Sequence record: OU509535.1
Strand: one strand, 5' to 3'
DNA: 64,000 nt
Shown: in pieces, positions 49,221-53,456 of the stretch
How positions within the stretch are numbered: position 1 is the stretch's first letter
Layout of the letters: each line of letters starts with the position of its first letter
Made by a program: the position numbers and the translations under genes
The notes under the pieces: generated by a model
The model's database searches: none
Told to the model about the DNA's origin: nothing
Seen by the model: the letters and a program-made list of their open reading frames with translations, nothing else

Positions 49221-49544
49221 ATGTGTACTGAAGCAAGAAGATATGTTTATATTTTGGTTCGCAAAGATTTAGAACTAAAGGATATTATTGTTCAAACTGC
49301 TCATGCTTCATATGAAAGTGCAAAAGAATTCAAAAATAATGCTGATAGAACATCTATTATAGTTTTAGAAGTCAAGGACTTATACAAACTAAATGATGCT
49401 AAAAGTTATTTAAATTCTAATGGTATTAATTGGACTGTGTATACTGAAAAATCTTTAGGATTTGGAGAAACTGCTATCAGTACTGAAGCACTCAATAACG
49501 AACAACGAAAAATTATGCGTAAGTTCCAATTATTGAAAATATAA
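49221..49544 (+). CDS. second PTH2-fold protein
   Basis: YILVRKDL..VQTAHA, IIVLEV, TAIST, FQLL. Confidence 0.7.
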   Translation: MCTEARRYVYILVRKDLELKDIIVQTAHASYESAKEFKNNADRTSIIVLEVKDLYKLNDAKSYLNSNGINWTVYTEKSLGFGETAISTEALNNEQRKIMRKFQLLKI

Positions 49545-51615: not shown

Positions 51616-51706
<91 letters not shown>

Positions 51707-51714
51707 GATTTTAT

Positions 51715-51764
51715 GGATAGTTATAAAGTTGAATTAACAGCGACACTTAAAATTGTCACTATCC
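51715..51764 (+). ncRNA. 50-nt tRNA-like repeat, copy 3
   Basis: ggatagt/actatcc closing stem; same layout as copies 1 and 2. Confidence 0.7.
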
Positions 51765-51785
51765 AAATTTTAATTTAAATAGTAC

Positions 51786-51814
51786 TTGACAAAAATGTTC
51801 AGTACTTATATAAT
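51786..51814 (+). promoter_or_regulatory. sigma70 promoter for the intron-containing tRNA
   Basis: TTGACA-17-TATAAT with AGTACT at 51781 and 51801. Confidence 0.8.
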
Positions 51815-51829
51815 GTAGAAAAGAACATC

Positions 51830-52130
51830 GGGACTGTAGCTCAGGGGTGAGAGCAACCGACTCATGGTTATCGTGACTTTCACAAGCAATTGTGATTGAA
51901 AAACTGGATGAATTCAGGGAAACCTTAACACGTAATGGTGATGGCAATCCTGAGCCAAGCCCAATAAGCGTATTGGGAAGGTGCAGAGACTAGGTGGTTC
52001 AGCACGATCTTGCTGTGTAATACACCAATAGCGTCCGGCATCCTTATGGGATGATGATATAGTCCGTGCCTTTACGAAAGTATTGGATAAACGAATCGGC
52101 AGGTCGTTGGTTCAAAACCAACCAGTCCCA
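51830..52130 (+). tRNA. tRNA-CAU (probably Ile2, possibly elongator Met) split by a group I intron; exons 51830-51865 and 52094-52130
   Basis: joined exons give a cloverleaf with loop CT-CAT-AA; lacks initiator features. Confidence 0.88.
51866..52093 (+). mobile_element. group I intron (IC3, tRNA-intron type), 228 nt, no internal ORF
   Basis: P AATTCAGGGAAAC, Q AATCCTGAGCC, R GGTGCAGAGACT, S GATATAGTCC; U-G at the 5' splice site (tcat/gtga), P10 ggtt/aatc, terminal G. Confidence 0.92.
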
Positions 52131-52148
52131 CTTATTAAAGAAAATACA

Positions 52149-52574
52149 ATGGAATGGCGTAAATTATATCTAAAGGAATTAGATATCTATATAAATGTAT
52201 CAGATGAAGGTAATCTTCAAACATTCGATAGATATGTAACACAAACATCAATAAAAGGCAATGAATATACTAGACTAGTTGAAGGAAAAGAACTTTGTCC
52301 ATACATTAATGGTAAAGCTGGATATAGTCAAATTGGTATTCATTCTGGTGGTATACAGAAAAAATACTATGTTCATCGTCTTGTGTGGATAGCTTTCAAT
52401 GGTGAAATACCAGAAGGTTATGAAATTGATCATGATGATAATGATAAAAGTAATAATGCATTGAGCAATTTAAATCTTAAAACAAGAAAAGAAAATATGG
52501 ATAAAATGCTCATACATAGACCGTATATAAAAGAAAATTTCATTAAGAACTTTGCTCAAAAGAAAAACAAATAA
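52149..52574 (+). CDS. freestanding HNH homing endonuclease (NUMOD4-like + HNH)
   Basis: VSDEGN, VHRLVWIAFNGEIPEGYEIDHDDNDKSNNALSNL. Confidence 0.92.
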   Translation: MEWRKLYLKELDIYINVSDEGNLQTFDRYVTQTSIKGNEYTRLVEGKELCPYINGKAGYSQIGIHSGGIQKKYYVHRLVWIAFNGEIPEGYEIDHDDNDKSNNALSNLNLKTRKENMDKMLIHRPYIKENFIKNFAQKKNK

Positions 52575-52575
52575 T

Positions 52576-52648
52576 GACTCTGTAGCACAATCGGTGGTGC
52601 GATTGACTGTTAATCAATTGGTTGGGGATTCGAGTTCCTCCAGAGTCG
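52576..52648 (+). tRNA. tRNA-Asn(GUU)
   Basis: cloverleaf, attga-CT-GTT-AA-tcaat; no encoded CCA. Confidence 0.9.
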
Positions 52649-52667
52649 CTTAACAAACCAAAGAATT

Positions 52668-52814
52668 GTACCTAAATAACGAGTATATGGATTCTCTATG
52701 ATTGTCCCTGTATGAGTTAGAGAGATTATTCATAAGAAGTCGAGTGTATAGATTCTCAAAGAAATGATTGTTTATACATGAGTTATCTTAAAACGAATAT
52801 CTCAAGGTACACCA
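52668..52814 (+). ncRNA. candidate ~147-nt ACCA-ended stable RNA
   Basis: gtacct/aggtac closing stem followed by ACCA; no ORF. Confidence 0.4.
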
Positions 52815-52821
52815 AACAATT

Positions 52822-52870
52822 GACTCTGTAGTTCAGTTGGTAGATCTTATATAGTTACCAACCAGAGTCG
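52822..52870 (+). pseudogene. internally deleted tRNA-Asn-like element (mini-tRNA)
   Basis: acceptor gactctg/cagagtc+G identical to tRNA-Asn; no anticodon arm; gttggta/taccaac hairpin. Confidence 0.7.
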
Positions 52871-52878
52871 CTTACAAT

Positions 52879-52943
52879 GGAAGGTGGTAATACATCAGTA
52901 TTACCTTTTAAGACCGAAGATATGAGTATCTTCCCTTCCACCA
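52879..52943 (+). ncRNA. 65-nt three-way-junction RNA ending in ACCA
   Basis: ggaagg/ccttcc+ACCA, ggtaatac/gtattacc, gaagata/tatcttc. Confidence 0.6.
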
Positions 52944-53034
52944 CACATTGTACTCTTCTCCCGTAAGGAGAATGACAAAAAAACTATCCGAAAGATAGAA
53001 AGCCTGAAATAACAGGGTGCAATTAAATTACAAT

Positions 53035-53099
53035 GGGACATGTAGACGATAACACCAATATACTTCCAAAGGGTTGTGAGGTGCGTAATATTCCCACCA
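53035..53099 (+). pseudogene. degenerate tRNA-like element ending in ACCA
   Basis: ggga/tccc+ACCA; internal arms poorly paired. Confidence 0.35.
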
Positions 53100-53101
53100 A
53101 T

Positions 53102-53231
53102 TTTGGACAAATCGTACTGAATTAGTACTGTAATAATAGACACTTATTGCTGTAAACTGGAATGCGGTATACATTCCTTCAGATACAGAGTGTGACAATA
53201 CGATGTTAAAGGTATCCTTTGACTGTCCAAA
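53102..53231 (+). ncRNA. candidate 130-nt multibranch RNA
   Basis: tttggaca/tgtccaaa closing; nested acact/agtgt, ctgta/tacag, ggaatg/cattcc. Confidence 0.5.
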
Positions 53232-53255
53232 TTAATTTAAATGGAGTACTGAATA

Positions 53256-53456
53256 ATGTCCAAATATGTTAATCGTCAAAAACGAAAAGCACGTACTAAG
53301 GACGAAATTCTACAGTTGATACAAAAAAATCAAAAAGATGTAGTTATTGAAGAATATATTTTTCAGTACGGTAATCAACAATCAATGGTACAAGAAAGTA
53401 ATGGTAAGTATCATTCTGAGCATTACGATCTCATTAAACGAATTCTTTTGAAATAA
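53256..53456 (+). CDS. hypothetical protein
   Basis: GGAG RBS. Confidence 0.65.
   Translation: MSKYVNRQKRKARTKDEILQLIQKNQKDVVIEEYIFQYGNQQSMVQESNGKYHSEHYDLIKRILLK

Follow-up and report, generated by a model that had tools for sequence, protein, structure and literature searches.

A jumbo-phage tRNA(CAU) gene, most likely a tRNA-Ile2, with a group I intron in its anticodon loop

The group I introns described from bacteriophages reside in protein genes. According to a 2014 review, every phage group I intron seen by then was located in a protein-coding gene despite the many transfer RNA (tRNA) genes that phages carry, which it notes as a puzzle (PMC3984707); a similar remark made in the first-pass annotation of the DNA studied here is borne out by that review. 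The same source places the Azoarcus and Synechococcus pre-tRNA introns in class IC3, with tRNA-Ile as the Azoarcus host gene, and tells group I classes apart partly by the elements P2, P7.1 and P7.2 (PMC3984707). In Lak megaphages, 'enigmatic' introns in tRNA genes were reported in 2018 as the first phage tRNA introns (preprint 10.1101/356790). Here we describe a locus within a 64,000-nucleotide (nt) stretch of sequence record OU509535.1 (the whole stretch is called the window below), in which a tRNA gene with the anticodon CAU, tRNA(CAU), is interrupted by a group I intron. We have good confidence in a reading wherein this phage gene, most likely encoding tRNA-Ile2, is cut between tRNA positions 36 and 37 by an intron without an open reading frame (ORF), which would be self-splicing and would act as a selfish mobile element, probably assisted by an HNH endonuclease. 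In the searchable literature, including reviews of jumbo phages, neither this locus nor any other group I intron in a phage tRNA gene was found to be described.

Several described systems resemble parts of this arrangement. The self-splicing Azoarcus intron lies in the anticodon loop of a tRNA-Ile gene with a CAU anticodon, directly 3' of that anticodon, as does the intron in the window, but its host is a bacterium rather than a phage, and the phage intron differs in having a P7.1-type extension and relatives in phage protein genes. The introns of cyanobacterial and plastid tRNA-Leu(UAA) and of cyanobacterial tRNA-fMet are also group I introns, ORF-less or endonuclease-bearing, in tRNA anticodon loops; unlike the present one, they interrupt other tRNAs (in tRNA-Leu at a different loop position), belong to class IC3 and reside in cellular genomes. 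The Lak megaphage introns likewise occur in phage tRNA genes as conserved intervening sequences, with intron-less variants, but lie in other tRNAs and, in the portion of the preprint available, are given no ribozyme class. Regarding the endonuclease gene that neighbours the intron, collaborative homing is known from the psbA intron of cyanophage S-PM2 with F-CphI and from T4 mobE with the nrdB intron; in such pairs the intron shields the genome that carries it from the enzyme, which in turn makes the intron mobile (PMC6083498; PMC2790892). Both feature an ORF-less intron beside a free-standing endonuclease gene, and the F-CphI case is the closest described arrangement to ours, although here the candidate partner is an HNH_3 protein, the putative target is a tRNA gene and the pairing is not constant across phages. 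A further parallel is T4 SegB, the product of a homing endonuclease gene among phage tRNA genes, which drives preferential inheritance of the tRNA region (PMC2330249); this gene is also embedded in a phage tRNA cluster, but it encodes a GIY-YIG enzyme and no intron is involved.

The source record is that of an unannotated Klebsiella pneumoniae phage of 347.5 kb, which positions 51700-52700 match at 100%, and the flanks of the locus are 99% identical to phages RaK2 and K64-1 (genus Alcyoneusvirus). The genes, promoter and intron elements whose window positions are given below lie on the + strand. The 5' exon of the tRNA gene (51830-51865) supplies the 5' strand of the acceptor stem, the D arm, the 5' strand of the anticodon stem and loop residues C32, U33, C34, A35 and U36, while the 3' exon (52094-52130) supplies A37, A38, the 3' strand of the anticodon stem, the variable loop, the T arm, the 3' strand of the acceptor stem and the discriminator A, CCA not being encoded. 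Between them lies the 228-nt intron (51866-52093), which contains no ORF and has the omega-G at 52093 as its last base; the insertion point is between tRNA positions 36 and 37, directly 3' of the CAU anticodon. Direct reading of the joined exons gives a 73-nt tRNA whose acceptor, D and T stems have 7, 4 and 5 base pairs (bp), respectively, whose loop reads CUCAUAA and whose anticodon stem has 5 positions, one of which is A-C (27:43). In its intron mode ARAGORN returns the same structure (tRNA(cat), 74 nt, 51830-52131, 228-nt intron at 36-37, 'ctcat-Intron-aatcg'), and Rfam RF00028 matches with 89.9 bits (gathering score 50; E = 1e-21), the sole group I intron found between 51706 and 52576; its relatives score 95-104 bits.

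The first-pass annotation had also proposed that tRNA annotation tends to miss this gene, and this proved to be so. ARAGORN in default mode reports six tRNAs in the window (Leu-UAA, Gly-UCC, Arg-UCU, Ser-GCU, Ser-UGA and Asn-GUU) but none between 51706 and 52576, and no feature is annotated at the locus in any annotated GenBank record examined. When applied to the CAU alleles of two other loci, L165 and L166, the intron mode wrongly called tRNA-Arg and shifted the intron; because of such mis-calls, intron-aware tRNA finders are unreliable for this gene. The 3' CCA also varies among alleles, being absent from the genes of the window (52128-52135), L166 and phage Turkey5 and encoded in those of phages KP13-7, RaK2 and WPEC5 and of locus L167.

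Since natural intron-less alleles read through the junction, its exact position is fixed. RaK2 and K64-1 carry at this place, with tRNA-Ser(UGA) on one side and an HNH gene on the other, an uninterrupted tRNA(CAT) that reads ...CCGACTCAT AATCGG..., and the E. coli phage WPEC5 reads ...GACTCAT AATCGTT..., which is the Turkey5 exons joined. The RaK2 and WPEC5 alleles, two independent intron-less forms, are both continuous across the predicted junction CTCAT|AATCG. Similarity between Turkey5 and the best-matching intron-less phages, WPEC5 and EJP2, breaks off precisely at the final nucleotide of the 5' exon. Overall, the 228-nt group I intron, its boundaries and its position in the anticodon loop directly 3' of CAU, all of which had been read from the letters in the first pass, are upheld by Rfam, ARAGORN in intron mode, covariation and the intron-less alleles.

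To describe the ribozyme we aligned nine members of the family: three copies carried by tRNA genes, one from a cyanophage psbA and five from genes of Vibrio phages, of which four split the large-terminase gene terL and one lies in another ORF. Without constraints, RNAalifold draws P1, P2, P3, P4, P5, P6, P6a, a two-part P7.1-type hairpin and P8 from this alignment, with double compensatory changes in 29 of 52 pairs. A separate count found 97.2% of pair cells to be canonical, vs 28-46% in controls in which the 3' partners were slid by one to three columns, and 30 of the 52 pairs to be compensated, vs 4-9 in the slid controls. In the window, the P2 hairpin (51880-51895) has 6 bp, five of them with compensatory changes, and a GNRA loop (GCAA), L2 being GNRA in all members. 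The 5' strand of P3 (51904-51910) pairs with its 3' strand (52032-52038, placed by alignment and pair counts), with a C-G to U-A change in 4 sequences. Alignment and pair counts also place the P4-P5 domain (51914-51953), made up of P4 (51914-51919/51948-51953) and P5 (51923-51924/51943-51944), and it is followed by P6 and P6a (51954-51982; 51954-51956/51980-51982 and 51960-51966/51971-51977), P6a having compensatory changes in 5 of 7 pairs. The P8 hairpin (52039-52053; 52039-52043/52049-52053) shows them in 3 of 5 pairs.

The 5' strand of P7, GACUA (51988-51992), is part of the conserved R element GCAGAGACUA and has UAGUC at 52060-52064 as its partner; it is matched by the Rfam consensus, and by analogy with the family this helix would be the guanosine-binding one. 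J8/7 and the 3' strand of P7 (52054-52065) make up the S element GAUGAUAUAGUCC, which is invariant in the family. As P7 and both elements are identical in all nine members, P7 is consistent with the structure but uninformative on covariation. Between P7 and the 3' strand of P3 is a 34-nt P7.1/P7.2-type extension (51993-52026), with an outer stem (51993-51996/52023-52026) and an inner stem within 51997-52018, both of which show compensatory changes. The P9 hairpin (52069-52086) was read from the sequence and carries a GAAA loop (52076-52079), as does L9 in eight of the nine members, and the terminal intron base is G in every one. We rejected the 5' end of the Rfam alignment (51778-51815) as P1 and P2, since it is a misalignment onto an inverted repeat at the promoter; P1 and P2 proper lie at 51862-51895.

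In P1 (51862-51876), which is well supported, exon UCAU and the first two intron nt (51862-51867) pair with an internal guide at 51871-51876. The wobble at the 5' splice site, U51865.G51873, is U.G in 8 of the 9 aligned members, the ninth having an alignment gap. The guide co-varies with the host exon, being UCAU/GUGA in the tRNA gene, CGAU/GUCG in terL and GCAU/GUGC in psbA, with the U.G pair kept. The first pass had read all core elements and both guides as in place; the core and the P1 guide have good support, but P10 is short and varies from allele to allele. Candidates for P10 span 3-4 bp and their register shifts between alleles: in the window, intron nt 1-4 (GGUU) could pair with exon +1 to +4 (AAUC), the pairing is CGA/UCG in KP13-7 and CAA/UUG in L166 (one compensatory change), and the L167 allele has no obvious P10. 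These weak and shifting pairings weigh against splicing, as do the two U-U mismatches in the P9 stem of the window (its relatives have perfect 7-bp stems with the same loop). In public sequencing runs at the locus no spliced joint was seen, the data being only assembler contigs that are uninformative on splicing.

Taken at face value, these points would suggest an intron that has ceased to splice and a tRNA gene that is a dead remnant. We regard this as very improbable. The core is intact and is invariant where this is expected (P7, J8/7, omega-G and the U.G pair), its helices are maintained by compensatory change, and a perfect promoter is retained. The exons argue in the same direction, with a perfect cloverleaf in five diverged intron-containing alleles: all acceptor, D, anticodon and T stem pairs are kept via many compensatory changes, save for the A-C at 27:43 in the window. 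Because the cloverleaf has been preserved in this way, the tRNA appears to be in use and the intron, hence, to be spliced. As for the weak P10, exon pairing in the anticodon stem is said to be required for the intron of the Anabaena pre-tRNA (Zaug et al. 1993) and to help align its splice sites; by analogy, the anticodon stem may do so here.

The distribution of the intron bears on what it does for the phage. Seven jumbo-phage genome records contain it, and at least 10 close relatives lack it: RaK2, K64-1 and a minimum of eight jumbo phages of E. coli. Of the jumbo phages that infect E. coli, Turkey5 and TH47 have the intron, and at least 8 close relatives have the uninterrupted tRNA. As close relatives carry the same tRNA without interruption, the intron is dispensable, and from these comparisons it behaves as a dispensable mobile element and not as a required regulatory gate. 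An earlier suggestion was that splicing could gate the supply of an AUA-decoding tRNA, or that the unspliced precursor could form a reserve proof against host anticodon nucleases. A strong early-type promoter, the high conservation of the intron core across hosts (98% and 93%) and tRNA-targeting defences, which are known in the literature to select on phage tRNAs, would be in keeping with such a co-opted regulator or shield. However, the same tRNA occurs without the intron in close relatives, the patchy distribution is that of a mobile element, the helices seen are the standard ribozyme ones with neither a sensor domain nor an insert for ligand binding among them, and the mature tRNA would be as exposed as any other once spliced. 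We found nothing that supports the suggestion and consider it quite unlikely. The slot itself is plastic: in E. coli phage ph0011 (L170, 1049-1880) the place of the tRNA(CAU) gene is taken by a NUMOD4 HNH endonuclease gene, and a different CAT-anticodon tRNA, annotated as tRNA-Ile, lies ~700 nt downstream.

The relatives of the intron point to its origin. Its core is 98% identical in the Klebsiella phages Muenster, KP13-7, RCIP0023 and phiKp_21, and identity is 92-93% in TH47 and Turkey5, which are E. coli phages. Behind these rank introns splitting terL of Vibrio phages (78-83% over intron positions 30-228), followed by the psbA intron of cyanophage S-CBWM1, which is annotated as group I (74%), and introns of Staphylococcus Kayvirus phages. 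The terL introns (phages R16F, VnaP, 1.187.O and 1.193.O) and the S-CBWM1 intron are thus alike to ours in sequence (74-83% over ~85% of the intron), in helices and in the R and S elements; they differ in having protein-coding hosts, and their P1 and guide fit their own exons (CGAU/GUCG and GCAU/GUGC). In Vibrio phage vB_VpaM_R16F (L006:700-3199), terL is annotated as five coding-sequence fragments, between which lie at least 3 introns of this family, with the core motif at 1659, 2114 and 2764. A tight version of the core motif found no locus in IMG/VR and four in metagenome contigs, all four borne by tRNA(CAU). Loose scans of viral and genome collections for the exon-guide-core pattern gave at least ~150 loci, nearly all by chance, of which a profile filter kept three, none in a tRNA.

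We know of no IC3 tRNA intron with a P7.1 or P7.2 element between P7 and the 3' strand of P3, and the co-varying 34-nt hairpin at this position (51993-52026) does not match the IC3 architecture. On the basis of this element and of its relatives, we place the intron with the IA-type phage introns, at no finer subgroup. A kinship with the Azoarcus intron, as the first reading implied, was not borne out: the nearest relatives found are the terL and psbA introns and the co-varying insert is of P7.1 type. As these point to a source in phage protein genes, sharing of the insertion site with Azoarcus appears to be convergence, the Azoarcus intron being compared by description only. In the alternative, the intron would have arrived together with its tRNA gene from a bacterium and would descend from the IC3 lineage of Azoarcus and cyanobacteria. 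The gene type (a CAU tRNA) and, for Azoarcus, the insertion point are indeed the same, and the phage tRNA resembles the host tRNA-Ile2. Yet the best intron matches are in phage terL and psbA, the P7.1 insert is not known to us as an IC3 feature, the intron-less alleles imply separate histories of tRNA and intron, and a scan of bacterial genomes for the exon-guide-core pattern gave no true match among the matches listed (at least 120). We regard an IC3 origin as very improbable.

The anticodon CAU is compatible with more than one tRNA, and several lines of evidence make the AUA-decoding tRNA-Ile2 the most likely identity, in agreement with the first-pass annotation. As the E. coli reference for tRNA-Ile2 we used the CAT-anticodon gene annotated as tRNA-Ile in RefSeq. 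The spliced tRNA of the window is 77% identical to this gene, 61% to the elongator tRNA-Met genes (metT/metU) and 57% to the initiator (metZ). Its anticodon arm, CGACUCAUAAUCG, is identical to that of Ile2, the Met arm being AUCACUCAUAAUGAU. Features of an initiator were not seen, as G1-C72 is paired and the anticodon stem, ACCGA/UCGGC, is without the run of three G-C pairs at its base. The KP13-7, L166 and L167 alleles have the Ile2 acceptor stem GGCCCCU/AGGGGCC, and the best E. coli match of the RaK2 allele is annotated as tRNA-Ile, this allele also being ~80% identical to ileZ of Stx phages. Codon use is in keeping with this identity: the window has a G+C content of 31.6%, and in its 70 long ORFs AUA makes up 14.1 per 1000 codons and 17% of Ile codons. 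The other tRNAs of the cluster read UUA, GGA, AGA, AGU, UCA and AAU, all of them codons ending in A or U that the phage favours and that are rare in enterobacteria. Because these tRNAs and the AT-rich codon use of the phage fit AUA, the gene would supply an AUA decoder rather than an extra AUG decoder.

The elements by which TilS recognises E. coli tRNA-Ile2 are C4-G69, C5-G68 and G27.U43. All three are present in KP13-7, L166 and L167. In the window the corresponding pairs are A4-U69, C5-G68 and A27-C43; the departures at 4:69 and 27:43 weigh against the Ile2 identity of this allele and make its recognition by TilS uncertain. The same gene could instead encode an elongator tRNA-Met that leaves C34 unmodified and reads AUG, in line with A4-U69 in place of the C4-G69 of E. 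coli tRNA-Ile2 and with the name tRNA-Met given to its homologs, from the anticodon alone, by ARAGORN and in several GenBank records (those among the records examined that annotate the uninterrupted form call it tRNA-Met). On the other hand, every allele is nearer to E. coli Ile2 than to Met (for the window, 77% vs 61%) and has the anticodon arm of Ile2, the sister alleles have the GGCCCCU acceptor stem with C4-G69 and C5-G68, a phage of 31.6% GC needs decoding of AUA and not of extra AUG, and the curated relatives in Stx phages are named ileZ. We judge a tRNA-Met to be improbable.

A comparison of the window with KP13-7 reveals a mosaic. Identity is 100% in the upstream spacer, 70% in the 5' exon and 64% in intron nt 1-12, then 98% in intron nt 13-200, before it declines to 55% in P9 and 54% in the 3' exon. 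The same holds more widely, for when 51830-52130 is compared with L002, L003, L166 and L167 the tRNA exons are 54-79% identical and the intron core 93-98%, with the upstream spacer at 100%. A contig from a wastewater metatranscriptome (over window positions 51850-52043) contains the same intron with the first nucleotides of the window type and a further variant of the 5' exon, GGCCCCTTAACTCAGTGGT..., from which more alleles are seen to circulate than databases show. We read the mosaic as the product of recombination that has recurred at a hot spot with endonuclease genes on its flanks.

Downstream of the tRNA by 18 nt is a free-standing gene for an HNH_3 homing endonuclease (52149-52574; 141 amino acids; Pfam PF13392, E = 4e-19), which ends 1 nt before tRNA-Asn. 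Its product has no close relative in the sister jumbo phages; Klebsiella phage KP13-26 and T5-like phages supply the best matches (52-56%), and there too the gene lies within ~20 nt of a tRNA 3' end. Homologs next to a tRNA 3' end include L164:1418-1908 in Salmonella phage Kenya-K20 and L163:1459-1948 in KP13-26, which are unrelated phages. Such placements suggest an endonuclease family that specialises in tRNA clusters. In metagenome contig L166 (349 kb), a tRNA(CAU) with the same intron is followed, after ~28 nt, by a 52%-identical HNH_3/NUMOD4 protein; the sole similarity between that locus and the window is one collinear block of ~700 nt (70%) that takes in the intron-containing tRNA gene and the greater part of the HNH gene. 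Because the tRNA-intron-HNH block recurs in an otherwise unrelated stretch, endonuclease-assisted homing is suggested; recombination set off by free-standing HNH endonucleases encoded beside the tRNA has probably carried the intron from one jumbo phage to another.

Three observations weigh against a fixed partnership of this kind. The KP13-7-type phages and L167 have the intron with no HNH gene in the slot; RaK2, which lacks the intron, and Turkey5, which has it, carry a different HNH in the slot (69% identical to each other); and the HNH family of the window also occurs beside unrelated tRNA genes, so the link is not exclusive. A stronger version of the HNH-assisted reading is that a single mobile cassette comprises the tRNA-Ile2 gene, its intron and the HNH gene next to it, and that its endonuclease would cut the uninterrupted tRNA-Ile2 genes of co-infecting jumbo phages, the intron conferring immunity on its own copy; we put this forward tentatively and as rather doubtful. 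In other jumbo phages an intron endonuclease has reportedly been shown to act in competition between phages (Birkholz et al. 2024, cited in PMC13282480). Two more specific proposals were dropped. A derivation of the window exons, together with the HNH gene, from a T5-like phage is at odds with Kenya-K20, whose tRNA-CAT beside the homologous HNH is only 50% identical, and no remnant of the HNH gene that follows tRNA-Asn in KP13-7 was found in 52600-53300, a stretch that is RaK2-like at 98%.

The locus is part of a tRNA cluster, its immediate tRNA neighbours being tRNA-Ser(UGA) (51619-51706) and tRNA-Asn(GUU) (52576-52649), both identified by ARAGORN and Rfam. About 15 nt upstream of the tRNA(CAU) gene is a sigma-70 promoter sequence, TTGACA-17 nt-TATAAT (51786-51814), which matches the consensus at 12 of 12 positions and is the best in the region; we infer that it serves as the promoter of the tRNA. 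The -35 element is kept in RaK2 and KP13-7, as is an inverted repeat, AGTACTTGAC...GTTCAGTACT (51781-51806), which overlaps the -35 and the spacer and could be an operator or a simple hairpin. No terminator-like site was found between the tRNA and the next ORF. Between tRNA-Leu and tRNA-Gly lies a 107-amino-acid ORF (49221-49544) with a match to peptidyl-tRNA hydrolase PTH2 (Pfam E = 5e-6), a translation-rescue enzyme inside a phage tRNA cluster.

These observations lend themselves to a straightforward model for how the gene is expressed. Host RNA polymerase would transcribe it from the sigma-70 consensus promoter, and the intron would fold into P1-P9 with the P7.1 extension. Exogenous guanosine would attack after U36, at the U.G pair of P1, following which the omega-G (52093) would enter the G site and ligation of the exons as CUCAU-AAUCGG would bring back the anticodon loop of seven bases within a canonical cloverleaf. 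Maturation would be completed by RNase P, trimming of the 3' end and addition of CCA, and conversion of C34 to lysidine by the host TilS would enable it to read AUA. The intron would be a selfish mobile element from a lineage otherwise found in phage protein genes, tolerated because it splices. By collaborative homing, HNH-started recombination would spread it, while in its own genome it would break up the target site.

The locus is a clear counter-example to the rule that phage group I introns occur only in protein genes, and indicates that a tRNA anticodon loop could become the new target of an intron lineage at home in phage protein genes. Because the unrelated Azoarcus intron uses the same site, this part of the anticodon loop is suggested to be intrinsically favourable. 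Inventories of phage tRNAs and analyses of codon supply are biased as a result of the interrupted gene being unannotated, and the annotated uninterrupted form being called tRNA-Met, in the phage records examined. If the mobile cassette outlined above is real, the fast, compensated divergence of the exons around a near-unchanged core would record an arms race between endonuclease recognition and escape of the target, and a translation gene would be a battleground of competition between phages. Phages of the laboratory hosts Klebsiella and E. coli that naturally have or lack the intron make its splicing, homing and effect on fitness directly testable.

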